This document shows positions 4,414-63,323 of a DNA stretch of 64,000 nt, piece by piece (positions within the stretch are counted from its first letter, which is position 1; each line of letters opens with the position of its first letter). The notes below the pieces were generated by a model. That model made no database searches, had not been told where the DNA came from, and saw nothing but the letters and a program-made list of their open reading frames with translations. The stretch is from positions 1 through 64,000 of the forward strand of contig NIVC01001515.1 of the NCBI GenBank assembly GCA_002269645.1, written 5' to 3'. Position numbers and translations under genes: made by a program. This DNA comes from Macrostomum lignano. Taxonomy: Eukaryota.

Positions 4414-4688
4414 CGGCGCTGGCGACCCTATCCAGTGGCTTCGGCCGAATTTGGGTATGCGGGTCTGGCTCGCCAACCTGCAGGCCGTGGTACTGCTCAA
4501 CGTACTCTCTAATGCCTAAGGTGTTGACCGTGCCGATAAGCTGGAAGGCCGGGGAGTAGTCCGGTCGCAAGCGGTCCCCCTCCTGGTTTCGGGCCAGCCT
4601 TGAGGGTGCTATTGGCCTACTGCCCGGTCAGGTGGAGCGGCCGGGTGGGTACCGCGCCCCTTTGAGGGTAGCCCACCAACCTTTTATC

Positions 4689-5626: not shown

Positions 5627-5665
5627 TGGCCCTGGGCTCTAGCCAGAAATTGCATTTAATACAGT

Positions 5666-35400: not shown

Positions 35401-36525
35401 ACCCCTTAGCTAAGTGGGTTAGCGTATTATCCGCCAACGCTGTGAGTTAAGCATAGTTGGTAGCGGTTAGTACGCAACGCGGCTGAATAGTGGTAGAATT
35501 ATAATTAAAGGTAGTAGTTTAATTTTTTTAGCAGATTAATAAACTTTAAATTTTTAAAACATAACAGCATTTATAAAAGTCTGTTTAAGCTCAAATTCGT
35601 AAATTCCAATCACAGAATCGTTATGCAATGCATTGGTATGAGTCATGTGACGCATCAATTATATTGGCACTCTGACGCACAAAATATAGGTTAGAATCCT
35701 ACCTTCGTAGTTATAGCAGATGCTAATTGCCTAGCAACTATGTTAAATGACTTTCACTGTTCCCCAATCAAGGTATTCCTTACAATGAACTACACAGCCG
35801 CTATTGTTGTCGAAGACGATTTGGACATAGCGCCAGACTTTTTCGACTATTTTATCCATCTGGGCCGCGTGATGGCCCAGGACCCCACCGTGTGGTGCGT
35901 GTCGGCCTGGAACGACAACGGCAAGTCCAACCTGATCGACACGGCCCGATCCGACCTGTTCTACCGGACCGACTTCTTCCCCGGCCTGGGCTGGATGCTG
36001 CTCCGGCCAACCTGGCTGGAGTTGCGGACAGGCTGGCCGGCTGCCTACTGGGACGATCACATGCGCAAGGCCGGCGTCCGGCGCGGCCGAGCCTGCCTCC
36101 GCCCCGAGGTGTCCCGCAGCTACACATTCGGCCGGGTGGGAGTCAGCAACGGCCTGTATTTTGATAAATACCTGCGCTTCATTGAGCTGAGCAAACGGCC
36201 GGTTAACTACGCTGCTATGGATCTGAGCTACCTGTTGAAATCTAATTACGATTCCTATTACCTGGACCGGGTGTACAAACTGCCATCGGTGACGCTGGAC
36301 ATTGCTCTGGGAGTCGGATCCGGCGCGCCAGCCGAGGTTCGTGTCCAGTACAACGGGCCAAAAGAGTTCGTTGCCATGGCCAAGCGGCTGGACATCATGC
36401 CGGACTTCAAAGACGGCGTGGCCCGCTGCGCCTATAGCGGCGTTGTGCCCGTGTTCAAATCCGGCCGCCGGATCCACCTGGCGCCCGGCCGGCCGTGGAA
36501 GGGCTACGATGTAACTTGGAAGTGA
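32462..36525 (+). CDS. MGAT1: Alpha-1,3-mannosyl-glycoprotein 2-beta-N-acetylglucosaminyltransferase (GnT-I, GT13), 3 exons, about 461 aa
   Basis: Exons 32462-32741, 34925-35277 and 35773-36525 with consistent phases. Type II TM anchor plus coiled stem. Motifs VLVIACNRP, VSQDC, YYYISRHFRWA, IVVEDDLDIAPDFF, CVSAWNDNG, RTDFFPGLGWML, WDDHMR, RPEVSR. Confidence 0.95.
32843..34178. repeat. 29-bp minisatellite (CAGTCACTCATTGGCAGTGCTAATCCTTA), about 45 copies, in MGAT1 intron 1
   Basis: Directly visible. Confidence 0.97.
34190..34480 (+). repeat. Dispersed repeat, copy 1 (copy 2 at ~56440-56745)
   Basis: Shared runs include GTTGGAGTGACTCGCAGACGCAAACAACTGGCTATTGGTGCAGC and ACTGAGAATGTACATGCCAGC...CAACACCGAGGAGGGCAATAAAAAT. 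Confidence 0.8.
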
Positions 36526-43000: not shown

Positions 43001-46000
43001 TTCCATCTCCAGGTCCCATTCCACAGGTCCCATCCCGATCCCATTCCACAGGGTTCCATCTCCAGGTCCCATTCCACAGGTCCCATCCCGATCCCATTCC
43101 ACAGGGTTCCATCTCCAGGTCCCATTCCACAGGTCCCATCCCGATCCCATTCCACAGGGTTCCATCTCCAGGTCCCATTCCACAGGTCCCATCCCGGTCC
43201 CATTCCACAGGTCCCATCCCGATCCCATTCCACAGGTCCCATCCCGATCCCATTCCACAGGTCCCATCCCGATCCCATTCCACAGGTCCCATCCCGATCC
43301 CATTCCACAGGGTTCCATCTCCAGGTCCCATTCCACAGGTCCCATCCCGATCCCATTCCACAGGTCCCATCCCGATCCCATTCCACAGGGTTCCATCTCC
43401 AGGTCCCATTCCACAGGTCCCATCCCGATCCCATTCCACAGGGTTCCATCTCCAGGTCCCATTCCACAGGTCCCATCCCGATCCCATTCCACAGGGTTCC
43501 ATCTCCAGGTCCCATTCCACAGGTCCCCTCCCGGTCCCATTCCACAGGTCCCATCCCGGTCCCATTCCACAGGTCCCATCCCGGTCCCATTCCACAGGTC
43601 CCATCCCGATCCCATTCCACAGGTCCCATCCCGATCCCATTCCACAGGTCCCATCCCGATCCCATTCCACAGGGTTCCATCTCCAGGTCCCATTCCACAG
43701 GTCCCCTCCCGGTCCATCCCCGTCCCATCCCGATCCCATTCCACAGATCCCATATTTATTTTTTTTAGTTATCAATAAATATTGGGAGCTTTGGCGCCAA
43801 AATGAAGTTTTCGTGTCTCTATTAAATTAACTTCAGAACTATCAATCTAAATGCGTAACCTTGAATTAAATCAATATTTGCAGCCGACTCGCTTTATTCT
43901 TCTGAGAAGATTTGTGCAGAATGAAACTGATAAGCGGCTGGAGTTCGCTGGATTACAAATCAATTTTGGTAAGCCAGTTACCAGTGATTGCAAAGAGGTC
44001 ATGTCATCGCGTGACAACTTTCCCTTGTATCCACCAGAGGGAATGGCACCGAGTGAGAGAAGAGGGAATGGCACCGAGTGAGAGAAGAGGGAATGGCACC
44101 GAGTGAGAGAAGAGGGAATGGCACCGAGTGAGAGAAGAGGGAATGGCACCGAGTGAGAGAAGAGGGAATGGCACCGAGTGAGAGAAGAGGGAATGGCACC
44201 GAGTGAGAGAGTGGAATGGCCAGGGGACCGAAGTGATAATTGAAAACATATTAAGTAATGGGCGAGTAAAGAATTCAAAAGAATATGATGATGAGTCCGC
44301 TAATCAACTGCGCTGTGTGCGCGCTCTCTCTCTCTCAGATGATGCAGCTGTTCAGCTGGTCAGCCGCAGCAGCCAGTCGGTCTGTTCAGCGGTCGGCCTG
44401 GACCGCCTTCGGCCTGGCACCATGCTGGTGGCCTGCCTGCCCTGCCAGACTCAGAAGACTCCGCTGTGCAGCCTCCAACCACTCGTGGGCAATTTCAAGT
44501 TTGTGAGTTGCAGTAAATTAATAACGGTTTAAGATACTCTTGTTAGTAAGGACAAGCTCACAATTCGTTGCATACTTGCCAGCAAAAGGGGCGAAACATT
44601 TATTAGTTTCTTATGAGAGCCAGATGTTTTCTGCCGAATGTTTGTTTGCAGGATGTTTGCTTGCAGGATGTTTTCTGCCGAATGTTTGTTTGCAGGATGT
44701 TTGCTTGCAGGATGTTTTCTGCCGAATGTTTGTTTGCAGGATGTTTGCTTGCAGGATGTTTTCTGCCGAATGTTTGTTTGCAGGATGTTTGTTTGCAGGA
44801 CGTTTGTTTGCAGAATGTTTGCTTGCAGGATGTTTGTTTGCAGGATGTTTGCTTGCAGGATGTTTGCTTGCAGGATGTTTGGTTGCAGGATGCTTGTTTG
44901 CAGGATGTTTGCTTGCAGGATATTTGCTTGCAGGATGTTTGCTTGCAGGATGTTTTCTGCCGAATGTTTGTTTGCAGGATGTTTGTTTGCAGGACGTTTG
45001 TTTGCAGAATGTTTGCTTGCAGGATGTTTGCTTGCAGGATGTTTGCTTGCAGGATGTTTGCTTTCAGGATGTTTGTTTGCAGGATGTTTGCTTGCGTTTG
45101 CTTGCAGGATGTTTGTTTGCAGTATGTTTGCTTGCAGGATGTTTGCTTGCAGGATGTTTGCTTGCAGGATGTTTGCTTTCAGGATGTTTGTTTGCAGAAT
45201 GTTTGCTTGCAGGATGCTTGTTTGCAGGATGTTTGTTTGCAGGATGTTTGCTTGCAGGATGTTTGGTTGCAGGATGCTTGTTTGCAGGATGTTTGCTTGC
45301 AGGATATTTGCTTGCAGGATGTTTGCTTGCAGGATGTTTGCTTGCAGGATGTTTGTTTGCAGGATGTTTGCTTGCAGGATGTTTTTTTGCAGAATGTTTG
45401 TTTGCAGGATGTTTGTTTGCAGGATGTTTGCTTAAAGGATGTTTGTTTGCAGGATGTTTGTTTGCAGGATGTTTGCTTGCAGGATGTTTGCTTGCAGGAT
45501 GTTTGGTTGCAGGATGCTTGTTTGCAGGATGTTTGCTTGCAGGATGTTTGCTTGCAGGATGTTTGGTTGCAGGATGCTTGTTTGCAGGATGTTTGCTTGC
45601 AGGATATTTGCTTGCAGGATGTTTGCTTGCAGGATGTTTGCTTGCAGGATGTTTGTTTGCAGGATGTTTGCTTGCAGGATGTTTTTTTGCAGAATGTTTG
45701 TTTGCAGGATGTTTGTTTGCAGGATGTTTGCTTAAAGGATGTTTGTTTGCAGGATGTTTGTTTGCAGGATGTTTGCTTGCAGGATGTTTGTTTGCAGTAT
45801 GTTTGGTTGCAGGATGCTTGTTTGCAGGATGTTTGCTTGCAGGATATTTGCTTGCAGGATGTTTGCTTGCAGGATGTTTGCTTGCAGGATGTTTGTTTGC
45901 AGTATGTTTGCTTGCAGGATGTTTGCTTGCAGGATGTTTGCTTGCAGGATGTTTGCTTTCAGGATGTTTGTTTGCAGAATGTTTGCTTGCAGGATGCTTG

Positions 46001-49000
46001 TTTGCAGGATGTTTGTTTGCAGGATGTTTGCTTGCAGGATGTTTGGTTGCAGGATGCTTGTTTGCAGGATGTTTGCTTGCAGGATATTTGCTTGCAGGAT
46101 GTTTGCTTGCAGGATGTTTGCTTGCAGGATGTTTGTTTGCAGGATGTTTGCTTGCAGGATGTTTTTTTGCAGAATGTTTGTTTGCAGGATGTTTGTTTGC
46201 AGGATGTTTGCTTAAAGGATGTTTGTTTGCAGGATGTTTGTTTGCAGGATGTTTGCTTGCAGGATGTTTGCTTGCAGGATGTTTGGTTGCAGGATGCTTG
46301 TTTGCAGGATGTTTGCTTGCAGGATGTTTGCTTGCAGGATGTTTGGTTGCAGGATGCTTGTTTGCAGGATGTTTGCTTGCAGGATATTTGCTTGCAGGAT
46401 GTTTGCTTGCAGGATGTTTGCTTGCAGGATGTTTGTTTGCAGGATGTTTGCTTGCAGGATGTTTTTTTGCAGAATGTTTGTTTGCAGGATGTTTGTTTGC
46501 AGGATGTTTGCTTAAAGGATGTTTGTTTGCAGGATGCTTGTTTGCAGGATGTTTGCTTGCAGGATATTTGCTTGCAGGATGTTTGCTTGCAGGATGTTTG
46601 CTTGCAGGATGTTTGTTTGCAGGATGTTTGCTTGCAGGATGTTTTTTTGCAGAATGTTTGTTTGCAGGATGTTTGTTTGCAGGAGGTTTGCTTAAAGGAT
46701 GTTTGTTTGCAGGATGTTTGTTTGCAGGATGTTTGCTTGCAGGATGTTTGTTTGCAGGATGTTTGCTTGCAGGATGTTTGCTTGCAGGATGCTTGTTTGC
46801 AGGATGTTTGCTTGCAGGATGTTTGCTTGCAGGATGTTTTCTTGCAGGATGTTTTCTTGCAGGATGTTTGCTTGCAGGATGCTTGTTTGCAGGATGTTTG
46901 TTTGCAGGATGTTTGCTTGCAGGATGTTTGCTTGCAGGATGTTTGCTTGCAGGATGCTTGTTTGCAGGATGTTTGCTTGCAGGATGTTTGTTTGCAGGAT
47001 GTTTGGTTGCAGAATGCTTGTTTGCAGGATGTTTGCTTGCAGGATGTTTGCTTGCAGGATGTTTGGTTGCAGGATGCTTGTTTGCAGGATGTTTGCTTGC
47101 AGGATATTTGCTTGCAGGATGTTTGCTTGCAGGATGTTTGCTTGCAGGATGTTTGTTTGCAGGATGTTTGCTTGCAGGATGTTTTTTTGCAGAATGTTTG
47201 TTTGCAGGATGTTTGTTTGCAGGATGTTTGCTTAAAGGATGTTTGTTTGCAGGATGTTTGTTTGCAGGATGTTTGCTTGCAGGATTTTTGCTTGCAGGAT
47301 GTTTGCTTGCAGGATGCTTGTTTGCAGGATGTTTGCTTGCAGGATATTTGCTTGCAGGATGTTTGCTTGCAGGATGTTTGCTTGCAGGATGTTTGTTTGC
47401 AGGATGTTTGCTTGCAGGATGTTTTTTTGCAGAATGTTTGTTTGCAGGATGTTTGTTTGCAGGATGTTTGCTTAAAGGATGTTTGTTTGCAGGATGTTTG
47501 TTTGCAGGATGTTTGCTTGCAGGATGTTTGTTTGCAGGATGTTTGCTTGCAGGATGTTTGCTTGCAGGATGCTTGTTTGCAGGATGTTTGCTTGCAGGAT
47601 GTTTGCTTGCAGGATGTTTTCTTGCAGGATGTTTTCTTGCAGGATGTTTGCTTGCAGGATGCTTGTTTGCAGGATGTTTGTTTGCAGGATGTTTGCTTGC
47701 AGGATGTTTGCTTGCAGGATGTTTGCTTGCAGGATGCTTGTTTGCAGGATGTTTGCTTGCAGGATGTTTGTTTGCAGGATGTTTGCTTAAAGGATGTTTG
47801 TTTGCAGGATGTTTGTTTGCAGGATGTTTGCTTGCAGGATGTTTGTTTGCAGGATGTTTTCTTGCAGGATGTTTTCTTGCAGGATGTTTGCTTGCAGGAT
47901 GCTTGTTTGCAGGATGTTTGCTTGCAGGATGTTTGGTTGCAGGATGTTTGCTTGCAGGATGTTTGCTTGCAGGATGCTTGTTTGCAGGATGTTTGCTTGC
48001 AGGATGTTTGTTTGCAGTATGTTTGCTTGCAGGATGTTTGCTTGCAGGATGTTTTCTTGCAGGATGTTTGCTTGCAGAATGCTTGTTTGCAGGATGTTTG
48101 CTTGCAGGATGTTTGTTTGCAGGATGTTTGCTTGCAAGATGTTTTCTTGCAGGATGTTTTCTTGCAGGATGTTTGCTTGCAGGATGCTTGTTTGCAGGAT
48201 GTTTGCTTGCAGGATGTTTGCTTGCAGGATGCTTGTTTGGTGGAAGTTTGCTTGCAGGATGTTTGTTTGCAGGATGTTTGCTTGCAGGATGTTTGTTTGC
48301 AGGATGTTTGTTTGCAGGATGTTTGTTTGCAGGATGTTTGCTTGCAGGATGCTTGTTTGCAGGATGTTTGCTTGCAGGATGTTTGGTTGCAGGATGTTTG
48401 CTTGCAGGATGTTTGCTTGCAGGATGTTTGTTTGCAGGATGTTTGCTTGCAGGATGTTTGTTTGCAGGATGTTTGTTTGCAGGATGTTTGCTTGCAGGAT
48501 GTTTGCTTGCAGAATGTTTGCTTGCAGGATGTTTGCTTGCAGGATGTTTGCTTGAAGGATGTTTGTTTGCAGAATGTTTGTTTGCAGGATGTTTGCTTGC
48601 AGGATGTTTGGTTGCAGGATGTTTTCTTGCAGGATGTTTTCTTGCAGGATGTTTGCTTGCAGGATGCTTGTTTGCAGGATGTTTGCTTGCAGGATGTTTG
48701 GTTGCAGGATGTTTGCTTGCAGGATGTTTGCTTGCAGGATGCTTGTTTGCAGGATGTTTGCTTGCAGGATGTTTGTTTGCAGTATGTTTGCTTGCAGGAT
48801 GTTTGCTTGCAGGATGTTTTCTTGCAGGATGTTTGCTTGCAGAATGCTTGTTTGCAGGATGTTTGCTTGCAGGATATTTGCTTGCAGGATGTTTGCTTGC
48901 AGGATGTTTGCTTGCAGGATGTTTGTTTGCAGGATGTTTGCTTGCAGGATGTTTTTTTGCAGAATGTTTGTTTGCAGGATGTTTGTTTGCAGGATGTTTG

Positions 49001-52000
49001 CTTAAAGGATGTTTGTTTGCAGGATGTTTGCTTGCAGGATGTTTGTTTGCAGGATGTTTGTTTGCAGGATGTTTGTTTGCAGGATGTTTGCTTGCAGGAT
49101 GTTTGCTTGCAGGATGTTTGCTTGCAGGATGTTTTCTTGCAGGATGTTTTCTTGCAGGATGTTTGCTTGCAGGATGCTTGTTTGCAGGATGTTTGTTTGC
49201 AGGATGTTTGCTTGCAGGATGTTTGCTTGCAGGATGTTTGCTTGCAGGATGCTTGTTTGCAGGATGTTTGCTTGCAGGATTTTTGTTTGCAGGATGTTTG
49301 CTTAAAGGATGTTTGTTTGCAGGATGTTTGTTTGCAGGATGTTTGCTTGCAGGATGTTTGTTTGCAGGATGTTTTCTTGCAGGATGTTTTCTTGCAGGAT
49401 GTTTGCTTGCAGGATGCTTGTTTGCAGGATGTTTGCTTGCAGGATGTTTGGTTGCAGGATGTTTGCTTGCAGGATGTTTGCTTGCAGGATGCTTGTTTGC
49501 AGGATGTTTGCTTGCAGGATGTTTGTTTGCAGTATGTTTGCTTGCAGGATGTTTGCTTGCAGGATGTTTTCTTGCAGGATGTTTGCTTGCAGAATGCTTG
49601 TTTGCAGGATGTTTGCTTGCAGTATGTTTGTTTGCAGGATGTTTGCTTGCAGGATGTTTTCTTGCAGGATGTTTTCTTGCAGGATGTTTGCTTGCAGGAT
49701 GCTTGTTTGCAGGATGTTTGCTTGCAGGATGTTTGCTTGCAGGATGCTTGTTTGGTGGAAGTTTGCTTGCAGGATGTTTGTTTGCAGGATGTTTGCTTGC
49801 AGGATGTTTGGTTGCAGGATGTTTGCTTGCAGGATGTTTGCTTGCAGGATGCTTGTTTGCAGGATGTTTGTTTGCAGGATGTTTGCTTGCAGGATGTTTG
49901 TTTGCAGGATGTTTGTTTGCAGGATGTTTGTTTGCAGGATGTTTGTTTGCAGGATGTTTGCTTGCAGGATGCTTGTTTGCAGGATGTTTGCTTGCAGGAT
50001 GTTTGGTTGCAGGATGTTTGCTTGCAGGATGTTTGCTTGCAGGATGTTTGTTTGCAGGATGTTTGCTTGCAGGATGTTTGTTTGCAGGATGTTTGTTTGC
50101 AGGATGTTTGCTTGCAGGATGTTTGCTTGCAGAATGTTTGCTTGCAGGATGTTTGCTTGCAGGATGTTTGCTTGAAGGATGTTTGTTTGCAGAATGTTTG
50201 TTTGCAGGATGTTTGCTTGCAGGATGTTTGGTTGCAGAATGCTTGTTTGCAGGATGTTTGCTTGCAGGATGTTTGTTTGCAGTATGTTTGCTTGCAGGAT
50301 GTTTGCTTGCAGGATGTTTTCTTGCAGGATGTTTGCTTGCAGGATGCTTGTTTGCAGGATGTTTGCTTGCAGGATGTTTGCTTGCAGGATGTTTGCTTGC
50401 AGGATGTTTGCTTGCAGGATGTTTGCTTGCAGGATGCTTGTTTGCAGGATGTTTGCTTGCAGGATGTTTGCTTGCAGGATGCTTGTTTGGTGGAAGTTTG
50501 CTTGCAGGATGTTTGTTTGCAGGATGTTTGCTTGCAGGATGTTTGCTTGCAGGATGTTTGCTTGCAGGATGTTTGCTTGCAGGATGTTTGCTTGCAGGAT
50601 GTTTGTTTGCAGGATGTTTGCTTGCAGGATGTTTGCTTTCAGGATGCTTGTTTGCAGGATGTTTGTTTGCAGGATGCTTCTTTGCTGGAAGTTTGCTTGC
50701 ACGATGTTTGTTTGCAGTATGTTTGCTTGCAGGATGTTTGCTTGCAGGATGTTTGTTTGCAGGATGTTTGCTTGCAGGATGTTTGCTTGCAGTATGTTTG
50801 TTTGCAGGATGTTTGCTTGCAGGATGCTTGTTTGCAGGATGTTTGTTTGCAGGATGTTTGCTTGCAGGATGTTTGCTTGTCGAAGGCTGTTTGCAGGAGT
50901 TTATCAAGCGGCACCAACCTACGAGCGTAACTGGTACGAGATGCATGTAGAGGGAGTACGGCCACCACGTGACTGGCGCACAAAGGGAGGTCTCCAGAAA
51001 GGAGGAGCGCTCCCTTAGGATGGCACCAAAAGAAAAAAAAGCTATAAAACAGTAAACAGAACGAGAAAAGAGGAACTGGCTTCCTAAAAAAGCAGTTTTC
51101 AGTGGTACACGTGAATGACTTTTACAATATTTTTAGGAAGCCGCAGGCAGTGCGGCGGCCTACCTGCTGACGATCAACGGCCGATTTCGCAACAGTCAAT
51201 TGGACTGCAGCTTCCGGTGCGCCAGCGGAGCCAGTGGCCGATTCAATAGGACGATCGGGTTCATCTGTAGGCAGCCCGGTTCTTCTGTACATGCATTCGT
51301 GCTTCTACAATAGAAAATCAAGCAAAAAAGAAGTTCGCTGCACTTTCAAATCGTTAATTTTCCTACGTTAAGTAGGGTAGCTGTAGTGCGCTGTCGACCT
51401 GAGGGAGGGTAGCTGTAGTGCGCTGTCGACCTGAGGAAGGGTAGCTGTGGTGCACTGTCGGACCTGAGGAAGGGTAGCTGTGGTGCACTGTCGGACCTGA
51501 GGAAGGGTAGCTGTGGTGCACTGTCAGACCTGAGGAAGGGTAGCTGTGGTGCACTGTCGGACCTGAGGAAGGGTAGCTGTGGTGCACTGTCGGACCTGAG
51601 GAAGGGTAGCTGTGGTGCACTGTCGGACCTGAGGAAGGGTAGCTGTGGTGCACTGTCGGACCTGAGGGATTGTAGCTGTGGGAGTGGTGCAATGTCGGAC
51701 GTGAGGGAGGGTAGCTGTGCTTCACTGCTTCATTATTTAACAACCAGTTCTAGAACAACGAGTTTTAGGTGAATTTCTGAGTCTTCTGTTCGGGAGCACG
51801 AGAATTGCCCGCCGAGCTTTGCCCGCAGTGGAATTTGCCCGCGAGTGAATTGCTCGCCGAGATTTTTCCCGCCGAGATTTGCCCGAAATGCTTTTTTTCT
51901 TGCGGCGCATTTAGTCACGTGACAGCTATATTTTGCATGCCCCCTAATGCTTATTAAGTCTTAATAAAGAGATTTATCCGATCAAAACGCTTTGATAGTA

Positions 52001-55000
52001 ACTGCATATCAAATTTATATTTTTCTTGTAGGCACTCAGTTCTGTATATACATGCATCTATTAATTCATGCATATTCCATGTCGCTTTGTTCCCCAAATC
52101 TCTTTAATAAGACTTACTAAGCATTGGGGAGGCAGTGCAGACAAAATCTGCGACGTGAAAAAATGCGCTGCAGGAAAAAAGCATTGCGGGCAAATCTCGT
52201 TGACCCTGTCTGTTCTACTACTCTATAAAATTAACAAATATAGTTTCTCTGAAGCTTGACGTCTTTTTAATGTCAAGGAAACTCCGAAGCCCTATCTAGC
52301 TAATGTATTCTGCAGTAAAAATTACACGATTTGCGAGTACAGAATTCTTCTTGAGCGATTTGTTTGCTCATGATCATTTATGCGTCTTAAGAGTCATTGT
52401 GGGCAGCAGAAGCATAAGTAAAAAGTAAATAATTTTTACTCAAAATACTCCGCAGCAAAGCCGAAAGCTGTCCATCTGGACATGGGCGGATCCGTGTGGG
52501 TCGTGGGGACCGAAGCGCTGGTGACCTTCAGTACCGAGCCGGCGTTTCCAAGGCCGCTGCACCACTGCCTGCTGATTGATCGAGCTGGCTCGCCGAAGCT
52601 GATCTTGGAGACCAAGCATGACAATGTTCGAGTCGGGGGTTTTTATGTTGAGTGGGATGGGACTTTATCCTCAGCTCTTTGTGGTTCGTTGGGGTGCAGA
52701 AGAGGTAGTTTGGGCTGCACTGCAACACACTCCAATGCATTCCAGTCGACTCCAATTGCAACCCAAGACAATGAACCACACTTAAGTGCACTTCAATACA
52801 TTCAATTCACTGAATCCCGCAGTTGACTGACGTGGGTGACGGACTGGAATTTCGCAGCAGCACGTTCAGCCTACGAGTCAACGAGTCGATGGTCGGCGGG
52901 AGCATTTCGTGCGCCTACTCTCTGGAGAGAACTTCGGAGGAGTCGCAAATAACCGAGAGCATACCGAAGTTGATTTGTGCGCGCTCACTGTGAAACTGCA
53001 TAGCACTCAGCCTTTTTGTACCGTTCAGTGTTTTACAGAGGGCGAGTCCCCTACATTGCTCTCTTGCACCGAAGGACACAGGTTCAAGTCCAGATATAGC
53101 CACTAGATAGTGCAAGTACCGTCTCCACAATCTCCCGCAGATTCGTGCAAAACGCTGTTCAATCAGCCGCCAGAAACTGATTGGCGGCCTGGCTTCACAT
53201 TCACATTCACTGTGAGCACGATTCCAACTCTTCGGAGCAGAAGTTGTTTGGCTACAACCCACACCTGCCACCTAAAGCATAGGCATGGGCGGAGTCGTCT
53301 GACATCTGTGTCTGTAAGCGACTAATTTGTCTTTTGAGGTGTGCGCCACTCTCCCTCAGGTCCGACAGTGCACCACATCTACCCTCCCTCAGGTCCGACA
53401 GTGCACCACATCTACCCTCCCTCAGGTCCGACAGTGCACCACAGCTACCCTCCCTCAGGTCCGACAGTGCACTATTGATAAAAGATGAAGTACTTAGGGT
53501 TGTCTCAAGGTGGCATGGTAGGTCTTTGAATCCCACCGCTGCCACCAACGAAGTAGATCGCTTTTTGCTTCCCGATTTAGTCACTTAAGCTTTACCTTAA
53601 GTCTCGAGCCTCTTCTCTCGGAAGCTTTCTTATTAGCTCTTAGTAGCGTCGGTAGTGCTGCCACCAGTTCCTTCATGTCTCGGCCTTCGGTGAGGTGAGC
53701 TTCCCGTCGGAACGAAATAAACAAGTCAAGGAACTCAGCACAGCGTGCAGATCTGCAGATTAATGAACAAGGCGTCCTGTCCTGTTCAGCAGATCCCGCC
53801 GGGCTCAGCGGGTGGCTGAGAAGGCAGTGTTAGCCTCCCTTAGGCTTCGGCGTCTAAGTTTAGTCAGGCCAATTACAGATAGCTTAAATGGGCAACTGAA
53901 CGAAGTCTGGAAAACTAGACTAAAGAAGAACTCCTTGACTGAACCAAGGGTGAGGGGCACGTATTTATAGGGGAATCCCCGCTGCGCCAGTGTGCGCCGG
54001 ACCTCGTGCCTTAGAGAAGGCAGGGTCTGCGGGTAAAGTGCACAGGGCCGCATGACTCATTATCTATTTTTAGAAACATGAGTCACCTATTACCTTAGAG
54101 AAGGCAAGGGCCCTGAAGCACGTGATTCCTCCTGTAAACATGGGCCAACAAGTACAGTAAACATGTCTACTGCACTTTAGGACTTCGAGAAAACAAGACT
54201 TGTCAAGTGACTTGCTCACCTGACAAGGGAAACAGGCCGCCAGCTTGATCTCAGGACAGGAACGAAACGCAGAGCAGGCCACAGCAGAGAAGCTCGTGGC
54301 TGCAAGCAAGAGCCCAGAGAAGAGATGGGGGGGCGACAGAGAACAGGCAGAAAACTACGAAGGCTACGGAGGCTGACCAGCGGCAGACAGCGACTTAGGG
54401 CGAGGGCGAGGGCGAGGGAAGCCGCTGACAATAGTGCGACGCCTAACACCAAACTAGCGGATCACTACAAAGAGGATGTCAAATTAAGCTATAGAAGCAA
54501 AGCTGCAATTGATAACTTATCAGAACAATCGACTAGAAACGCCAAGACATCTCATCTAGGTCCCATTCTAGTTGTTTTAGTCGGCTTCGGGATCCATTCT
54601 ATAGCTTAAGTAGTTGAAAATTCTCTTTGTCAAAAAGAACAATTGCAGGATAATCTACTTCAAGTATAGGATGGCTCGTTTGCTAAAAATTCAAATAGCT
54701 ATCTTTGCGTTCATACTAATAAGAAATATAAAACTGCACCACTTTCAGTCGAGTAACACAAGCAGCACGTTTTCGCTGATTGTTCCGAAGGAGTGGGCTG
54801 ATTCGGCGTCCGTCCATTGTCTGGTGAATCAGTCAGGGCTCATCCTGGACACTGTCAGTTCGACACTTGGCAGGCCATCGCAAGGTGAGAATGGTCTTCG
54901 TGAATCATGATGAATCAAACGAACATTGTCACTCCTGGTTTGCATAGCCACGAAAAATATGTATAAGCCGCATGATCATTCCAAAACTGGTCTCATTTGA

Positions 55001-55940
55001 AAATGGTCTGAACGAGCCTATACATTTAGTCTCTAAGCTTGTACGAAGAATATTGTACAAACAGGTCATCTACATGGGTGACCACTGACTGACTGGGTGA
55101 CCACTTTTATTTAACACATTAGGCATGTATTTGAATGCCGAAACCATTGCAGAAGACGACAATCCGGGAGGTTTTGGCTTGCCGCAGTTTCTAACGAGCT
55201 TCATTCTGGGCAGCTTGTTGGTTTTTTCTGGTCTCTGCGTCTCGTTTAGATTGCTCTGCTGTCGTCGCAATGCAGCGAAAGAGCCACCTGTCAAAGCTGA
55301 TGCGGATGGCATATGTAACAGCGAATTCATTGCTCTGTCCAAACTGTCCCAGAAATCCCCGAGAGCGGTTGTTGACGGGCATTCATGCCACCGCGGGAGT
55401 GGTACTCCTCCAATTGTCAAGCCACACTCCGGAGTAGTTGAGAATGAGTACGACGTGCTGGCGAGTGCATCGACTCCTGCAACTCACGTTGGAGTAGTTG
55501 AGGATGAGTACGACCTGCTGGCGAGTGCATCGACTCCTGCAACTTACTTTGGAGTAGTTGAGGATGAGTACGACCTGCTGGCGAGTGCATCGACTCCTGC
55601 AACTCACGTTGGAGTAGTTGAGGATGAGTACGACCTGCTGGCGAGTGCATCGACTCCTGCAACTCACATTGGAGTAGTTAAGGATGAGTACGACCTGCTG
55701 GCGAGTGCATCGACTCCTACAACTCACATTGGAGTAGTTGAGGATGAGTACGACCTGCTGGCGAATGTATCGACTCCTGCAACTCACGTTGGAGTAGTTG
55801 AGGATGAGTACGACCTGCTGGCGAGTGCATCGACTCCTACAACTTACTTTGGAGTAGTTGAGGATGAGTACGACCTGCTGGCGAATGTATCGACTCCTGC
55901 AGGCTCCACAAGTGTACTTGTGAATGAGTATGATGAGTAG
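40066..55940 (+). CDS. Uncharacterised type I membrane receptor-like gene: possible discoidin/F-lectin-like N-domain, three Ig-like units, TM helix and a tyrosine-motif tail; has frame lesions
   Basis: Hand-built exons: 40066-40171 (tentative), 40553-40774, 40925-41129 (one base too long), 44339-44502, 51137-51266, 52456-52625/31, 52823-52976, 53039-53211 (in-frame TAGs), 54749-54884 and 55123-55940. All have AG/GT ends and a repeating phase 1-0-1 pattern. Domain names rest on remote motif resemblance only. Confidence 0.6.
41297..43750. repeat. Satellite of 25/28-bp units (CCCATTCCACAGGTCCCATCCCGAT / CCCATTCCACAGGGTTCCATCTCCAGGT), intronic
   Basis: Directly visible. It is stop-free in several frames and produces spurious 750-835 aa ORFs. 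Confidence 0.97.
44036..44222. repeat. 25-bp minisatellite (GAGGGAATGGCACCGAGTGAGAGAA), about 7 copies
   Basis: Period 25 at 44041/44066/44091. Confidence 0.92.
44625..50880. repeat. 6.2-kb 15-bp satellite (GCAGGATGTTTG[C/T]TT)n with higher-order structure, intronic
   Basis: Directly visible. It explains the ~2000-aa LAGC/LQDVC/KHPAS ORFs. Confidence 0.98.
51375..51720 (-). repeat. 33-bp minisatellite, about 10 copies (inverted relative to the 53350-53472 array)
   Basis: GGGTAGCTGTGGTGCACTGTCGGACCTGAGGAA is the reverse complement of the unit at 53353 (CCCTCAGGTCCGACAGTGCACCACATCTACCCT), apart from 1-2 substitutions. Confidence 0.92.
51792..52207. mobile_element. Mutator-like MITE
   Basis: TIRs GGGAGCACGAGAATTGCCCGC and GGGTCAACGAGATTTGCCCGC (revcomp), TTGCCCGC subterminal repeats, and flanks CTTCTGTTC / TGTCTGTTC (7/9). 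Confidence 0.65.
53350..53472 (+). repeat. 33-bp minisatellite, about 4 copies
   Basis: Period 33 at 53353/53386. Confidence 0.9.
53527..53547 (+). other. tRNA-Leu 3'-end match including CCA (PBS-like on the minus strand)
   Basis: GAATCCCACCGCTGCCACCA matches the metazoan tRNA-Leu 3' end as recalled. A second partial match GCTGCCACCA lies at 53657-53666. No complete cloverleaf is present. Confidence 0.55.
55123..55940 (+). CDS. Terminal exon of the receptor-like gene: TM helix plus cytoplasmic 20-aa repeats
   Basis: FLTSFILGSLLVFSGLCVSF (TM), then RLLCCRRN (basic/Cys stop-transfer), then 8 x GVVEDEYDLLASASTPATH and a final VNEYDE*. Confidence 0.8.
55431..55900 (+). repeat. 60-bp in-frame coding minisatellite, 8 units
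   Basis: GGAGTAGTT(G/A) starts at 55431, 55491 ... 55851. Confidence 0.97.
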
Positions 55941-56439
55941 GCGAGCAATTAGGTACTGAATAAAATTGGATTTCGATTTTACAATATAAAGCCACGGAGC
56001 ATGCTGGGTGTGCTTCTAATTCTGAAAATATGTCGGTCAGATAATTGCAAGCACTCACAAAAATCTACTGAAACGCTAAATTTAATATAGCTTCCTTAGG
56101 TTGTCGCTGTGTCAATATTGTGCATCCGATGCGTCATTAGTTTTAACAGTATTACGTAAAGGAACATTAATAATTAGATTAATAATTAGCCAAATTGAAG
56201 CTCCTCATCTATCCTAATGAAGCTGTCTACGAGTAGACGGACTTTTGATCTTTCGCTCGAACTCGCCTCTATGCCTCTTAAGTACACAACATTATGCTTG
56301 ATTGGTTATCTAAAACACATACTATCTATATAACTACCGTTAATATTATTAATGACTCTAGCAACGCTAGAGAGCACACGCTGTTTGAACAGGCTGGGCA
56401 ACCGTAGATGAACCACTTAGGCAGGCGTGTAATTGGCAT

Positions 56440-56745: not shown

Positions 56746-57914
56746 CCGCAGTCATCAGAGGATCTGTGAATTGCTGAAGTTTATTGCTCTTTTTCATTAC
56801 TACTCAGTTTGCTTACTATTGGTGCACCTGGACTTCAGAAATCCTGGTGATTGGCACGTCGTATGGACTCAAAGCCAGATCTCAATAATGTACTTTGCCG
56901 CTCAATACTCAAATCGCTTAAAAAACTGCAAATGGCATTGACGGTGACGAATGATACTTAAAATTGAACAGCCATCTCTCTAGAATAGGTTTCGGTGTGT
57001 GCTCGACTCTTCGAGTTTCAACTCGATTTAGACCGAGTTTCATATCTAAAAAGCGTTTTGTCGAGTTTCAAGCTTTTTCAATACAGGACATTTCAGTCAT
57101 ATCGTGTAGCTATCCTGTATTCTGTATTTTGCTATGTAATGGATAATGCATAAAACCTACTTTAATATAATAATATACGAGCTAACTCATTCTGAAAAGT
57201 TTGTTCACTTTCCTAGAAAAATGCCACTGATTCTTATAATTTTTTTAATCGAACCAATTTTAACAAAGAGCTGCCCGATAGGTTTGAATTGTCAATTTAC
57301 GAAATTTAAATCAAATGAATTGATTTTAAATGGTTAAAACTTTAAAAGAGCTTCTTTAAAGCAAGAATTGATTTACGAGGCTTGAAACAGTAGAAATACA
57401 AAGCCATTTTTCCGCCCATCGAACTTAGAGGCATTTTTTTGACAATTGTTTTTTCTGCACCCGAACGGAGCAACGCAGGCATTCGAAATGCAAGAACACG
57501 GCCTAACTTTTTGTTGCGCACCTTCTCAAACAAGAATCAAGTTGCCAGCCCTCTGGACCGTCAAGACATTCGAAGATTCAACCGGAGGTCAATTTTTTCT
57601 GTAGTGTCTTCAATACATCCCTGTGTGCCAATCAGCACTGCGCCTCAGTGCAGCCTTGCCAAGCCTCCAAATTTCATCAGCACATCAAGCACATAAGTCT
57701 CCATCAGCTCTGACTTCGTTGGTCACTGGCCTTCACCCAGGCGGAGCTTCTGATCTGGACCTTCATTACGTGGCACCAGGTAACTACATGTATGGACTCG
57801 CAGTTGCAAATTATTTTATTATTTTACTTTTAATTACTCGTCTTTGTATTTCGTACAAAAATATATTTACGACTCGTTTCGCATGCCTGTTAATGCAATT
57901 TTTTCTCTTTTTCT

Positions 57915-58521
57915 ACCGTCTAAATGGTCTGCGCTCTTGTGCACTGCTTCCGTACACTTGTATTCTGCACGCAGTCAGTTTCTATACACAAATAGACACG
58001 GTTTAAGCTACCGTCAAAATTGTCTGCGCTCGTGTCACTACCATCAAAATGGTCTGCGCTCTTGTGTCACTACCGTCGAAATGGTCTGCGCTCTTGTGTC
58101 ACTACCGTCGAAATGGTCTGCGCTCTTGTGTCACTACCGTCGAAATGGTCTGCGCTCTTGTGTCACTACCGTCGAAATGGTCTGCGCTCTTGTGTCACTA
58201 CCGTCGAAATGGTCTGCGCTCTTGTGTCACTACCGTCGAAATGGTCTGCGCTCTTGTGTCACTACCGTCAAAATGGTCTGCGCTCTTGTGTCACTACCGT
58301 CAAAATGATCTGCGCTCTTGTGTCACTACCGTCAAAATGGTCTGCGCTCTTGTGTCACTACCGTCGAAATGGTCTGCGCTCTTGTGTCACTACCGTCAAA
58401 ATGGTCTGCGCTCTTGTGTCACTACCGTCGAAATGGTCTGCGCTCTTGTGTCACTACCGTCGAAATGGTCTGCGCTCTTGTGTCACTACCGTCGAAATGG
58501 TCTGCGCTCTTGTGTCACTAC
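57915..58521. repeat. 32-bp minisatellite (ACTACCGTCGAAATGGTCTGCGCTCTTGTGTC), resuming at 62867-62935
   Basis: Period 32 at 58101/58133. The array is split by the LTR element. Confidence 0.95.
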
Positions 58522-58885
58522 TGTTGTGCTTTTGGCTTTTAGCCTTTGGAAATTGTCAGTCTAGCGGTCTGTTGACCTCTGACGCGTCTATCATTTATTC
58601 CATAACTCAATAGCATGGTTCAATTCATCAACGCAGTCGCGTAACAAAAATGTCTATGGCAAAGCCATCAACCCACAACACCCTCCCTCTTCTATAGGTA
58701 GGTGTACAATTATCACTCAGGTGCGATAAAAAATTCTAGTTTTCTTGGCCAAGCGTTCGCTTCGCCTGGGTGACGGCTTGGATTGAACTCCGGCCTCAGT
58801 CTGTTGCTGTTGTGCTCTCTCAGCTTGTTCTGTTCCCGGTAGTGTCTCAGTGTCTGTCGATGACGGACGCGTCTGTTGGCCGTCG

Positions 58886-61612
58886 TCACTTGGACCGTTG
58901 CCACCGGGCTTGGAATCCCCCATTTCCGTAGTTCCCGTGAGCCTCATGTACCTCACCGATTCGTAGTTGATCGAGGTGGGTCTTTAGATTTCGTCCAGTC
59001 TCTGTGGTGACGACTGCTGTGTTGCTGCCAAGCATTTTGGCGAATCTCACAGTTCGTGGCTCATGAGAACTCGATGCACGGTAGATGAGTGATTCTCCTG
59101 GGATCCACTTGGACTGAGTGCTGCTCTCCGAGATGGGGAGTCTTATTTGTCTGCCGTTCAACAACTCGGACGGTGATGCTTGCTGCTTCCCTTTGGCAGC
59201 TCTGTAGAACAGTAGAAATCTGTCAATACTTCTTTGGGATAAACCATTGGTCTTGATTGTCTCTTTGACGGTTCGCACCATTCGCTCTGCAATGCCGTTG
59301 CTCTGTGGATGGTAGGCGGGCGTTGTGATGTGCGAACAGCCAATCTGGGTGAGCCAGCCGGTCACCGCTTCGCTCACAAAACTAGGGCCGTTGTCTGACA
59401 CGAGACACTTGGGCACCCCCTGTTGTGAGAACAATCTTCTAAGTCTGGAAATGACTGTGTCGGCCTTCATGTCGCTCGTGATGAAGACTTCCGGGTAGCT
59501 CGAGTGCGCATCCACAATGATGAGTAGGTACTTGCCCTCTATCGGACCGGCAAAATCAATGTGCACTCGCTCCCAGGGGTTGTCAGGTTCTGGCCACGAG
59601 TGCCGAAAGTTCTTATTTCTGGGCTTGTACGCGTTGCACACGTTGCATCGTCCAATGTAGTCAGCGATGATGTCACGGTCCATCTGTGGCCACCAGAACT
59701 GTTCCCTCAAAATCGACTTTGACTTTTCCACCCCAAGGTGCGTTGAGTGTACAGCTGCCAGGGCAGTTTCTCTCAGGACACGAGGCAATACAATTCTGTT
59801 CATTCTGTAAATAATTCCATCATTGACAGTTAGCTCATCTTGAACCTTTGAGTAGCTGAGTAGGTGTGGGTCGTCAAATAGATTATTGTTAATTATGGCT
59901 GCGCCCAGGCATCTGAACTCCGGGTCCTCTCTGGTTGCGTGTGCAATGCGATCCAGCTGAATTACTCCCGGGTTGTCAGCTTCGAGGAGTCCGATCGATG
60001 CTGTCTGTGCATTCGGCTTAGCGGGCACCAGTCGAGATAGCGCATCCGACAGCATTAGCTTTGATGGTCGACACTGTATGTCAAAGTCATAAGCAGCTAG
60101 AATGATTGCCCATCGTTGTAGTCGAGCTGAAACTCTGGTGGGCAGCTGTTTGTCTGGCGCGAATATGTATGTGAGGGGCCGGTGATCAGTTATCAGTGTG
60201 AACCTCCGGCCATACAAGAACCGATGGCATCTTTGAATGCACCAAACCAGTGCCAGGCCTTCACGCTTTATTTGCGAATATTTTGTTTCGGCGTCAGACA
60301 GAGTCTTGCTCATGTACAGCACGACTTGACCGCTTTGTGTCAACACTCCGCCCAGAGCTCGCTGAGAACTGTCGCATTCCAGTTCAATGGGCTTCTCCGG
60401 ATCAAATATTTGAAGACTCGATTGATCAGAGAGAGTGACCTTGATTTTGTCAAATGCTATTTGACACTCCTTTGTCCACACGAAGTCCTCATTTTTCTTT
60501 CTTAGTCGATTGAGAGGCTTGGTCAGTGCAGCTAGGTTTCTGATGAACTTGCCGCTAAAATTTACGAGACCCAGGAAGGATTCAAGCTCGCCAACGTTCT
60601 GCGGTGGTGTCATGTCCTGGATTGCCTTCACTTTGGCTGGGTCCGGCTTGAGCTGATCTCCTTCCAATAAGTAGCCTAGAAACTTGATCGAAGTCTTGCG
60701 GAATTCACTTTTCGCCGTGTTGATCTTCAATCCTTGCTGGTTTAGTCGATGCAATACTTCCGTCTCGCGAACTGCCAATTGTTCTACGCCTTTGCCGCAT
60801 ATCAATATGTCGTCTACGTAGGCAATGACGCCAGGAATTCATTGTAGGACTTGGCTAATGTACCGCTGGAAGATTGCAGGTGCTGTTTTCACTCCGAATG
60901 GAAGCTTGTTGAAAGCGAACATCCCAAATGGTGTTGACATTACTGTCAGCTCTTTGGAAGCTTCATCTAGTGGGATCCGGTGATAAGCTTTCTCTAGGTC
61001 CAGACGAGTGTATATCCGGCTGCCAGCAGCAGTTGCAATCACTTCGTCAGGTGCAGGCATCGGATATGAATCGTTGATAAGATGAGAATTGATTGTCACC
61101 TTGTAGTCGACGCAAAGTCTGAGCTTTCCAGAAGGTTTCTTGACCACGACAATTGGTGAGGCCCATTCACTGAACTTGACGGGCTTGATGGTGTCTTCTT
61201 CAAGCAACCGATCGATTTCATCCTTGACTCCCTGTCTGAGTGCGAAGGGTAGCGGCCTGGGTTTGCAATGAATTGGAGTGGTTCCTTCCTTGATCTTAAG
61301 AGTTGCTGGTGGAAATTCGCATGACTGGGTTGCCGATGTGCAGTTGTTGTCTACAGCGTTTAGCGTGAAATTGAGCTTGTCTCGGCCAACCAGAACAAAG
61401 TTCCTCTGCGATTCCACAATGAAGAATGTGATTGGAATGAACTCGTCATTGTACTCCAACTCAGTTTCGTGTGTTCCAAAGACCTTCATCTGCGTATCAG
61501 CGTATGTTGTCAGAACAGTGTCTGTAGGTGTCAGCTTTGGACAACCCAATCGTTTCCAGATCGTTTTTGACATTACCGAAACTCCTGCCCCAGTATCGAT
61601 TTGTGCGTTCAC
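58886..61612 (-). pseudogene. pol: protease-RT-RNaseH-integrase with an in-frame TGA at 60839-60841
   Basis: Protease IDTGAG. RT LRLCVDY, DLEKAYHRIPL, PFGVKTAPAIFQR, then LQ*IPGVIAYVDD. RNase H CDSS. Integrase HHCC, HIDFAGP, SDNG, GIAER. Confidence 0.92.
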
Positions 61613-62680
61613 GCTAGCATCGACCCGCTCGTGTGTCTGAGCCTAACAGGCACGGTGTAGCTATCAACGGGATGTCGAATGTGAAAACAATCCTCCTGTT
61701 CAGCTTCGCTTGCATCTACAAAGCTTGTGGTCCTTGGCCACACTGCAGCTCGCCTAAATTGACCAGATGCTGACGGGCTTTTGAACGATTTTCGGCCTTT
61801 GCCAAAACCAGTTGATTTCGTTTTGCAAACTGTTGCGAAGTGGTTTTGCATGCCACATTTGTTGCACGTTTTTCCTTTCTCAGGACACCCTCCATTGGAG
61901 CCATGCATCGTGCCACATCTGCCACACTTGGAGCTTGTAGAGTGGGAGCCTCTGGCCACCGATGCTGAAATTTTCATTACTTCAGAAGACTGCGGCTGAC
62001 TGGTGCAACCCTTTAGTATTTGCGTTTGTGATAGGTTCTGGTGCGCCTCAGCGATGTTGATAGCTGTCTCAAACGTGAGAGTGCTGAAGTCCTGTTCCAA
62101 TAACTTGCTGATGGCCACCTTGTCATTCAAACCGAATACGAGCCGATCTCTCAGTCTCTCATCTCTGGATAGGCCAAACTGACACTTGTCTGCTTGCATG
62201 CAGAGTTGCTGTGCATACTCACGAATGCTCATTGATGCCGTGCCAGTGATATGCTGGAAATTGAATCTCTCAGCCATGACGAACGTCTTTGGTTCCAGGA
62301 TGCTGGCCAGTAGTTTGGTCAGTTCATCGAAGCTCTTTTCTCCCGGCTTCTTGGGAGCGGCTCGATCTGCCAATGCGTCGTATACAGCTTGGTGCTGAGC
62401 TTCATCAGCAGCAGCTTGTTTTTCGTGTCGTCCTGCCAGCCGTTGAGTTCGCTGCACAGTGTGAATCGGTCCAACCACCTCTGGAAGTTCGAACTTTCAT
62501 CGAGTTTTTCGATGTCAACTTGCTGTCCTCTCGATACTTGTGCGCTTGGATTCTGCGCTGTCGCTGTTGCAACTTTGTCGCTTGGACTGATTTCGACGAG
62601 ATCGCAAGCGGTGGTGCTTTGTCGCTCGAAACCGTTTTACCAATTCCTTTAGTTGGCGATGCTGGCGTACTTCCAGGCAT
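61609..62680 (-). pseudogene. gag, frameshifted, with two zinc knuckles
   Basis: LDESSNFQRWLDRF...KLLLMKLS (shifted frame), VYDALADRAAP..., RDERLRDRLVFG, CGRCGTMH....C and CNKCGMQNHFATVC. Confidence 0.85.
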
Positions 62681-63323
62681 TTTCGTAGCCTATGCTTGCC
62701 GACGCCACTGTTGTGCTTTTGGCTTTAGCCTTTGGCAATTGTCAGTCTAGCGGTCTGTTGACCTCTGACGCGTCTATCATTTATTTCATAACTCAATAGC
62801 ATGGTTCAATTCATCAACGCAGTCGCGTAACAAAAATGTCTATGGCAAAGCCATCAACCCACAACAACTACCGTCGAAATGGTCTGCGCTCTTGTGTCAC
62901 TACCGTCAAAATTGTCTGCGCACTTGTGTCACTGCCGCGTTTGCGCGCTTCTGCCTGTGCGCGCTATCTATGTCAAATCGTAAAGAATACACATGCGCGC
63001 TTATCTCAGGCGCGCTTATTCAGCCCTCCCAGCACCGAAACTAGACAACTCGAACAAAATCTACTTCTCACTTTTCTATACGAGCTAATTATTTAAAAGG
63101 GCCAAATTTCTGTTGTACCATATATGAAGCCTCTTTTTACTGATGCTGCAGGTCTGTCTATTTAATTAGAAATACTGATTTTGTTAGATTTTCCCTCCAA
63201 ATATGGCTCCCTAAACGTTCGCCTCTTTGTTCTCCAAATTTCCCATTTCTGTCTGCAAGCCTCATTAAAGAGGCGGAAAGGATTTCATGGCTTGGACTTT
63301 TCTGCACCATTGTTTCACCATTG

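Follow-up and report, generated by a model that had tools for sequence, protein, structure and literature searches.

The stretch of DNA analysed here (the window) comprises the first 64,000 nucleotides of contig NIVC01001515.1 of the flatworm Macrostomum lignano (assembly GCA_002269645.1). Between positions 54749 and 55964, on the forward strand, it contains the last two coding exons of what appears to be a type I membrane protein, in which a transmembrane (TM) helix precedes a C-terminal tail built largely from a 60-bp tandem array with one acidic tyrosine motif per unit. One database entry covers part of these exons. This is UniRef100_A0A1I8HFT5 (hereafter P0121), a Macrostomum lignano sequence of 99 amino acids (aa) named "Ig-like domain-containing protein" and partial at both ends. 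The following features were recognised at the locus:

54749..54884 (+): penultimate coding exon, SSNTSSTFSLIVPKEWADSASVHCLVNQSGLILDTVSSTLGRPSQ; identical to P0121 residues 1-45; acceptor ctttcag, donor CAAG/gtgaga with a score of 6.7
54885..55152 (+): phase-1 intron of 268 nt (238 nt with the alternative acceptor at 55121-55122), defined by the P0121 junction
55153..55940 (+): terminal coding exon (stalk, TM helix, linker, array and stop codon), defined by the P0121 match and a frame open to TAG at 55938-55940
55188..55247 (+): TM helix, FLTSFILGSLLVFSGLCVSF, identified by hydropathy, flank charges and an AlphaFold2 helix at residues 19-50 of the open reading frame
55248..55430 (+): unique 61-aa linker, predicted to be cytoplasmic, ending in the degenerate partial unit SGTPPIVKPHS; from translation, with no second copy in the window
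55257..55262 (+): juxtamembrane Cys-Cys (RLLCCRRN), four residues past the helix, read from the sequence
55431..55901 (+): probable coding minisatellite of eight 60-bp units of 20 aa, each with E(D/N)EYD(L/V)L and S-T-P, identified by Tandem Repeats Finder, translation and core-word counts
55902..55937 (+): diverged ninth unit at the C-terminus, ...GSTSVLVNEYDE, from in-frame alignment to the repeat unit
55959..55964 (+): AATAAA, probably the poly(A) signal, 19 nt downstream of the stop codon; at the hexamer frequency of the window (0.000625 per base), one would turn up within 30 nt with a probability of ~0.019

The open reading frame (ORF) at 55125-55940 (+) encodes 271 aa and comprises a 21-aa stub, the TM helix, the basic stretch RLLCCRRNAAKE, the 61-aa linker, the eight units, the ninth unit and the TAG codon. 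P0121 covers positions 55153-55313 at 99% identity and ends with ...KADADGI. It joins the translation of 54749-54884 (SSNTSS...GRPSQ) directly to EDDNPGGFGLPQ, the TM helix and ...KADADGI. The junction, which falls between GRPSQ and EDDNPGG, corresponds to a phase-1 splice (54884^55153) at the acceptor ...ccattgcag, with the AG at 55151-55152. Thus, the P0121 match fixes the species, the phase-1 splice from 54884 to 55153, the identity of the TM-helix frame with the repeat frame, and an N-terminal extracellular exon that carries the Ig-like label. This exon, 54749-54884, resembles the E-F-G half of an Ig-like domain.

The initial annotation of this DNA had proposed a spliced exon starting at 55123. 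Splicing agrees with the P0121 junction to the Ig-like-labelled exon, but the acceptor used there is not the one at 55121-55122. Namely, the exon probably starts 30 nt downstream of 55123, at 55153, in the same frame, and the residues MYLNAETIA are intronic under this model. The acceptor at 55121-55122, 30 nt upstream of that of P0121 and also in the same frame, has the better pyrimidine tract, and both acceptors may be in use. A short isoform starting at the ATG at 55125 is also possible.

The TM helix has a mean Kyte-Doolittle value of 2.05 (best 19-mer). The net charge of its flanks is -3 on the N side and +3 on the C side, where five basic residues are located. Because of these flank charges (positive-inside rule) and the Ig-like exon upstream, the protein is predicted to be of type I, N-out and C-in, with a cytoplasmic tail. 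The tail is 230 aa long and has a net charge of -27. The repeats were originally placed immediately after the helix; in fact, the unique linker (55248-55430) intervenes. Cysteines adjoining TM helices can be S-acylated, and the Cys-Cys pair may be a putative site of this modification.

The predicted orientation bears on the idea that the repeats form an extracellular mucin-like or sulfotyrosine stalk, with EDEYD as a tyrosine-sulfation site and ASASTPAT as an O-glycosylated segment, as in mucin variable-number tandem repeats (VNTRs) of 20 aa. The 20-aa period and the S/T/P/A-rich half of each unit resemble such stalks, and the acidic context of the tyrosine fits the preference of tyrosylprotein sulfotransferase. 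A mucin-type VNTR, however, requires extracellular S/T/P-rich repeats, whereas the array lies C-terminal to the TM helix on its basic side, with the Ig-like exon N-terminal to the helix, and is therefore predicted to face the cytoplasm. This makes an extracellular stalk extremely improbable.

Tandem Repeats Finder (TRF) identified one 60-bp array at 55431-55901 (period 60; 7.8 copies; 94% matches; 0% indels; score 837). Together with the ORF translation, it agrees with the originally reported eight near-identical units plus a terminal VNEYDE, that is, nine motifs. The eight units, GVVEDEYDLLASASTPATH, have the consensus GVV(E/K)(D/N)EYD(L/V)LA(S/N)(A/V)STP(A/T)T(H/Y)(V/I/F). The tail contains 11 tyrosines in total, nine of them in E-Y-D and two where histidine is replaced by tyrosine; seven or eight of the nine E-Y-D tyrosines are in the EDEYDLL form. 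Residues E6, Y7, D8 and L10 are invariant in 8/8 units. Eight copies of a 24-nt core of the unit lie exactly 60 nt apart, and none lies elsewhere in the window, with no matches in shuffled sequences; the unit is thus not repeated elsewhere in the window as an out-of-frame satellite.

The units share 94-100% DNA identity, display no synonymous differences, and none of them contains a frameshift or stop codon. Nine changes are distributed over eight variable sites. All nine alter the amino acid and 0/9 fall at codon position 3, a pattern that neither purifying selection nor plain neutrality would predict (P about 0.025 each). The edges of the array are more diverged than its centre. The first unit at the 5' edge has N and V (ENEYDVL) and follows the partial unit SGTPPIVKPHS; at the 3' edge, the ninth unit reads VLVNEYDE before TAG and has kept E-Y-D through the synonymous changes TAC>TAT and GAC>GAT. 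A homogenised centre with older edges is the usual anatomy of a minisatellite, and the array is young and recently expanded. The diverged edges, the synonymous retention of E-Y-D in the flanking relics and the invariance of E6, Y7, D8 and L10 give a small hint (n = 2) that the acidic tyrosine motif near the C-terminus may be older than the expansion and constrained.

Certain variant pairs are common to non-adjacent units, namely Y + F in units 2 and 7 and N + V in units 6 and 8. This suggests block duplications.

Several observations make it probable that the array is part of the coding sequence (CDS). The frame through the array is continuous with the annotated CDS of P0121, and neither a stop codon nor a good donor site occurs between 55313 and 55431. 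The 93 unique codons at 55153-55430 are all open, which has a P of about 0.01 at the stop-codon frequency of the window, and the ORF ends 13 codons past the last full unit. The AATAAA 19 nt after the stop, the positive-inside topology and the frame continued from P0121 are evidence for a terminal coding exon. A coding VNTR is marked by a period divisible by three, an uninterrupted frame that continues from the flanking CDS and a copy number that varies between alleles; in the single allele seen, the first two are present, with a period of 60 and no indels. The opposite view is that the array is a non-coding satellite crossed by an accidental ORF, the transcript ending or being spliced away before 55431. 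It draws on the end of P0121 (...KADADGI) ahead of the array and on the open frames found in many arrays of the window, where plainly non-coding repeats carry "ORFs" of up to 2136 aa (the 15-mer array). Given the stop-free and donor-free interval, the frame that continues from an annotated CDS, the poly(A) signal past the stop codon and a unit that is unique in the window, we consider this view very unlikely. The absence of the tail and of a GNT-I paralogue of the same window (described below) from protein databases is explained by the preparation of the M. lignano GenBank annotation, from which transcripts overlapping the repeat annotation were removed before submission (PMC5730564). Annotation pipelines that drop such transcripts will systematically lose genes of this kind.

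Upstream of the penultimate exon, two candidate exons were recognised:

52458..~52637 (+): candidate exon A, first half of an Ig V-like domain, 3' boundary uncertain; stop-free, acceptor ...ccgcag, codon-usage score +0.57
52823..52989 (+): candidate exon B, second half of an Ig V-like domain, SSTFSLRVNESMVGGSISCAY, uncertain; acceptor cccgcag, E-F strand signature, codon-usage score +0.33

When joined, exons A and B were predicted to form a nine-strand beta sandwich with a predicted local distance difference test score (pLDDT) of 62. In a Foldseek search of the PDB with this model, almost all of the 50 best matches were Ig V domains (E 0.02-0.08; TM-score about 0.5; probability up to 1.0), while Pfam and PDB sequence searches with the two exons gave no match. 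Assignment of the protein to the Ig superfamily is tentative and would draw on the UniProt label of P0121 and the fold match of the unlinked A + B composite, with no sequence-profile match. Exon B is followed by GTGAAA, and a candidate 39-nt intron at 52990-53028 (GTGAAA...ccgttcag) would splice out an in-frame TGA with no change of frame. Enumeration of splice sites and ORFs revealed no link from exons A and B to exon 54749-54884. Neither the first half of the domain completed by that exon nor a signal-peptide exon was found. Consequently, the earlier designation as a receptor is supported in part, by the TM helix and the Ig-like-labelled exon, while the ectodomain consists of a half-domain exon and two unlinked candidates, with no signal peptide found.

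A tandem duplication relating exons A-B to B'-C was considered and rejected as not significant (E 0.15). The candidate exons at 52458-52989 are bracketed by two inverted arrays of the same 33-mer (51374-51727 and 53345-53472; up to 128 nt, 94% complementary; ~1.7 kb apart), which gives this region a foldback-like look.

The tail was scanned with regular expressions for known short motifs. There were 10 matches to YxxPhi, seven to [DE]xxxL[LI] and 10 to [ST]P, in agreement with the YxxPhi, dileucine and S-T-P motifs pointed out originally, as well as eight to xLIR (the Atg8-binding extended LC3-interacting region) and seven to DLL. The same scan gave no match (0 each) to the immunoreceptor tyrosine-based activation and inhibition motifs (ITAM and ITIM), NPxY, YxN, YxxP or YxxM. 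The YDLL motifs are 16 residues apart versus the 6-12 needed for an ITAM, and only the relaxed form YxxL-x9-YFGV matches, twice. The ITIM pattern [SIVL]xYxx[IVL] fails at position -2, which is Asp or Asn. EDEYDLL does combine the acidic triad and YxxL of a hemITAM, but it is located in the C-terminal tail of a type I protein in nine copies, and no lectin domain was seen. Since DEYDLL fits several unrelated recognition systems, sequence alone cannot choose among them.

One of these systems is membrane trafficking. The reiterated YxxL, [DE]xxxLL and DLL motifs might act purely as AP-2 and clathrin signals for endocytosis or lysosomal targeting, with no role for phosphorylation. The occurrence of YDLL, DEYDLL and DLL 7-10 times each in a tail predicted to be cytoplasmic accords with this, and the use of such signals in this genome is indicated by the acid phosphatase encoded in the same window, which ends in a TM helix and a YHSLL tail. 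However, one or two sorting signals normally suffice, and an acidic residue at Y+1 together with an acidic context at positions -1 to -3 is more typical of kinase substrates. Judged from these motifs, an exclusive trafficking role seems unlikely.

Single-sequence AlphaFold2 modelling bears on a further possibility, in which the 20-aa units fold into a beta solenoid or an amyloid-like stack with the tyrosines as a structural ladder. In the model, the repeats form a regular stack in which each unit contributes two strands (pLDDT 70-80; predicted TM-score 0.54), 9/20 residues per unit are hydrophobic, and the nearest Foldseek matches of the model are beta-helix proteins. None of these matches was significant (best E 0.69), AlphaFold2 commonly makes solenoids from perfect tandem repeats, and each unit contains four acidic residues plus Pro and Gly in a tail with a net charge of -27. 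A folded repeat domain of the type modelled would, in our opinion, be quite improbable, slightly more so than a non-coding array.

Database relatives were sought among 5.8 billion proteins with a word-seeded search, among 1.84 billion representatives with a full HMMER scan, and in the window itself with tblastn of each exon. The word-seeded search gave no match with the ORF, and only P0121 with its non-repeat part. In the HMMER scan, P0121 was the one close match among the representatives. The 38 other matches were rejected as homologues; these are tandem-repeat proteins, and most or all of the matches look driven by periodicity. Those whose sources were looked up come from a crayfish, a mosquito, the diplonemid Diplonema and metagenomes and have only periodicity in common. 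No paralogous copy was detected in the window by tblastn, and the assembly index returned no exact product for the 271-aa ORF or for P0121. Paralogues or orthologues with the EDEYDLL unit, for which a search had been suggested, were thus not found in either protein collection.

The Pfam family HGAL (PF15666) matched the tail at E = 1e-10, with 41.8-42.2 bits from 2-5 stretches at profile positions 53-86 and a gathering threshold of 27. At first this match seemed to favour an adaptor of the ITAM type. Membership in the HGAL family was rejected: a single 40-aa pair of units scores 14.7 bits (E 0.034) against the threshold of 27, and arrays of shuffled units reach 43.1 and 40.7 bits with unrelated families (an antitoxin domain and YchJ_N). 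The low E-value is therefore an artefact of summing eight identical weak matches. Substitution of Tyr by Phe abolishes the match, which is accordingly centred on the tyrosine motif; the likeness to HGAL/GCSAM depends on tyrosine and concerns the C-terminal part of the profile, where its tyrosine motifs lie. HGAL/GCSAM is a lipid-anchored cytosolic adaptor without a TM helix, in contrast to the flatworm protein with its clear helix at 55188-55247.

An uncharacterised protein of the scallop Argopecten irradians, XP_069141799.1 (P0133), resembles the flatworm tail in having a single TM helix, a basic stop-transfer stretch and a C-terminal array. Its units of ~18-20 aa, HVGTVKEEYDKSED (HVGTVKEEYDKSEDxxTG), share the register H-V-G-x-V-x-x-E-Y-D with the flatworm units at 33-36% identity, with gaps of 2 aa per unit in BLASTP. 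They differ by the absence of L-L and S-T-P and by Tyr-to-Phe replacement in some units (EHFD); the scallop belongs to another phylum, and nothing is alike outside the repeats. The E-value of this match is driven by periodicity, and P0133 is more likely an analogue than a homologue. The combination of a TM helix with subsequent acidic-tyrosine repeats may have arisen by convergence in the two proteins.

The remainder of the window contains two mobile elements and parts of two further genes:

4632-9402 (+): LINE-like (long interspersed nuclear element-like) element that appears intact; an ORF1-like ORF of 255 aa and an ORF of 1225 aa with apparent endonuclease, reverse transcriptase and RNase H by reading
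19018-19740 (+): terminal exon of a histidine acid phosphatase (His_Phos_2, E 4e-7), with a C-terminal TM helix and a short tail with a YxxL-type motif
34993-35280 and 35770-36522 (+): two MGAT1/GNT-I exons separated by a 489-nt intron (Pfam, E 2e-96)
57600-63300 (-): LTR (long terminal repeat) retroelement; gag at 61609-62478, protease/reverse transcriptase at 60839-61612, and reverse transcriptase-RNase H-integrase at 58886-60805

In the databases, the MGAT1/GNT-I exons are matched best by an annotated MGAT1 of M. lignano with an identity of only 57%, which points to a divergent MGAT1 paralogue that is missing from protein databases. A TRF row at 35926-35972 overlaps one of these exons, and the overlap may explain the removal of the paralogue from the annotation. 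The LTR element has direct repeats at 58531-58689 and 62717-62875 (94% identical), and arrays of the same 32-mer are present in both LTR regions (58008-58521 and 62867-62937). Tandem arrays with periods of 4-60 bp make up ~27% of the 64-kb window, as compared with 15% of simple and tandem repeats in the M. lignano genome (PMC5730564). These include a 6.2-kb array of a 15-mer (44623-50879; about 418 copies) and a 2.4-kb array of a 25-mer (41295-43753). Long spurious ORFs in several frames are carried by several of the arrays.

The origin of the 60-bp array fits this minisatellite-rich setting, and the following interpretation is proposed. The locus would encode the end of an orphan single-pass type I membrane protein with one or more Ig-like exons outside and the acidic 230-aa tail inside. 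The ancestral tail may have ended in one or two copies of the acidic tyrosine motif (..ENEYDVL.., ..VNEYDE-COOH). Minisatellite instability would then have expanded a segment of 60 bp, or 20 codons, into eight near-identical in-frame units, so that the tail would present a tyrosine-based short linear motif in multivalent form. Phosphorylation by Src- or Syk-type kinases could allow pY-D-L-L to recruit proteins with SH2 (Src homology 2) domains, and the unphosphorylated YxxL and [DE]xxxLL motifs could bind AP-2 and mediate endocytosis. Thus, we tentatively regard the exon as the terminal exon of an orphan type I Ig-like protein in which a minisatellite multiplied an older acidic YxxL/di-leucine motif that would most likely serve as a tyrosine-based docking site, with a probability of roughly 0.45 for this statement as a whole. 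Flatworms possess both Src and Syk kinases (PMC4102852). The phosphotyrosine scaffold proposed in the initial annotation is partly supported, as regards a repeat in a continuing frame, on the predicted cytoplasmic side, in a phylum with suitable kinases; ITAM and ITIM are absent, and the reading of the motif is not unique.

A number of observations weigh against this interpretation. P0121 stops 39 codons before the array, and an open frame through the repeats is weak evidence of coding, as 3/6 frames of the unit contain no stop codons. By codon usage, the tail scores about -0.11 versus +0.23 to +0.70 for held-out known exons, in a comparison underpowered by its 587 training codons. The array itself bears no mark of purifying selection, as 9/9 inter-unit changes are nonsynonymous. 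No complete ectodomain could be put together, and past the candidate 39-nt intron the frame of exon B is blocked by a TAG at 53108; because of these two facts, the copy at this locus could be a gene fragment that is incomplete, decaying or a pseudogene. No orthologue or paralogue was found in either protein collection. The tail lacks a canonical ITAM or ITIM, DEYDLL also fits the Atg8-binding (xLIR) and clathrin (DLL) patterns, and AlphaFold2 gives a beta stack, not disorder, for the repeats. Finally, since the array is young and the genome rich in minisatellites, any dependence of valency on copy number may have arisen incidentally and not by design.

Many of these observations would also be accounted for by a neutral origin, that is, an in-frame minisatellite in an orphan or pseudogenised 3' exon, whose copy number has no selected function and whose protein is perhaps not made. 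Such an origin would be in line with the share of tandem arrays in the window (27%) and the open unit frames, with units of 94-100% identity that lack synonymous differences and homologues, and with a 5' part that could not be assembled, in which exon B runs into stops. The weak codon-usage score points the same way, as do the many duplicated blocks known in the DV1 genome (PMC5730564). On the other hand, the junction and frame are independently annotated in P0121 and a poly(A) signal directly follows the stop. No unit contains a frameshift or stop, the relic units keep E-Y-D by synonymous changes, and the lack of changes at codon position 3 (0/9; P = 0.026) is not predicted by plain neutrality. 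A neutral by-product or decaying gene copy is, on balance, a serious though somewhat doubtful explanation. Without expression of the tail, the array would be no more than a common in-frame minisatellite of a genome rich in repeats.

The proposed docking-site interpretation can be extended to an Ig-like receptor in which the number of EDEYDLL motifs varies among individuals, homeologous copies or sister species, so that minisatellite slippage would tune signalling or endocytic valency. We consider this extension rather unlikely, somewhat more so than an exclusive trafficking role. Expression and phosphorylation of the tail, if they occur, would make it a clear natural case of repeat instability creating scaffold multivalency in one step. 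M. lignano is amenable to transgenesis and RNA interference.

Among known phosphotyrosine scaffolds, the tails of nephrin (YDxV), p130Cas (YDxP) and the LAT/PAG type resemble the flatworm tail in being membrane-anchored and perhaps disordered, and in presenting many tyrosines in acidic context with Asp at Y+1. LAT and PAG also have juxtamembrane cysteines by the TM helix, as does the flatworm protein. In those scaffolds, however, the motifs are diverged and individually conserved, whereas the eight flatworm units share 94-100% of their DNA sequence. The flatworm tail has no YxN, YxxP, YxxM, NPxY, ITAM or ITIM sites, and no sequence homology to scaffold tails was found. The transmembrane adaptors LAT, PAG, NTAL and LIME combine a short ectodomain with YxN motifs of the Grb2 type; the flatworm protein has the TM helix, the Cys-Cys pair and 11 tyrosines but no YxN, and no transmembrane-adaptor family was matched in Pfam. 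Moreover, if P0121 is right, it has an Ig-like ectodomain in place of the short ectodomain stub of LAT-type adaptors.

The way in which the tail was probably formed has a parallel in the 48-bp VNTR in exon 3 of the dopamine D4 receptor gene (DRD4), an in-frame minisatellite in a cytoplasmic receptor segment with an interaction motif in each unit and a valency that is tunable in principle. The DRD4 repeats lie in a loop of a G protein-coupled receptor, provide proline-rich SH3 (Src homology 3) motifs and have a documented population polymorphism, while the flatworm repeats provide Tyr/di-Leu motifs in a C-terminal tail and were seen in one allele. Near-identical tandem units with one acidic tyrosine motif each are also present in the EPIYA region of CagA, in chlamydial Tarp and in the Bep proteins of Bartonella, whose copy number varies between strains. 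These are bacterial mimics of host substrates with no sequence similarity to the flatworm tail, which would belong to an animal's own membrane protein. Should the copy-number-tuned extension be true, the locus would encode an animal counterpart of the variable tyrosine-repeat effectors of bacteria, hidden from databases by repeat-filtered annotation. Scaffold function and coding-VNTR origin are each known elsewhere; what would be new here is a tail of tyrosine motifs generated by a recently expanded tandem repeat in a membrane protein of the animal itself.

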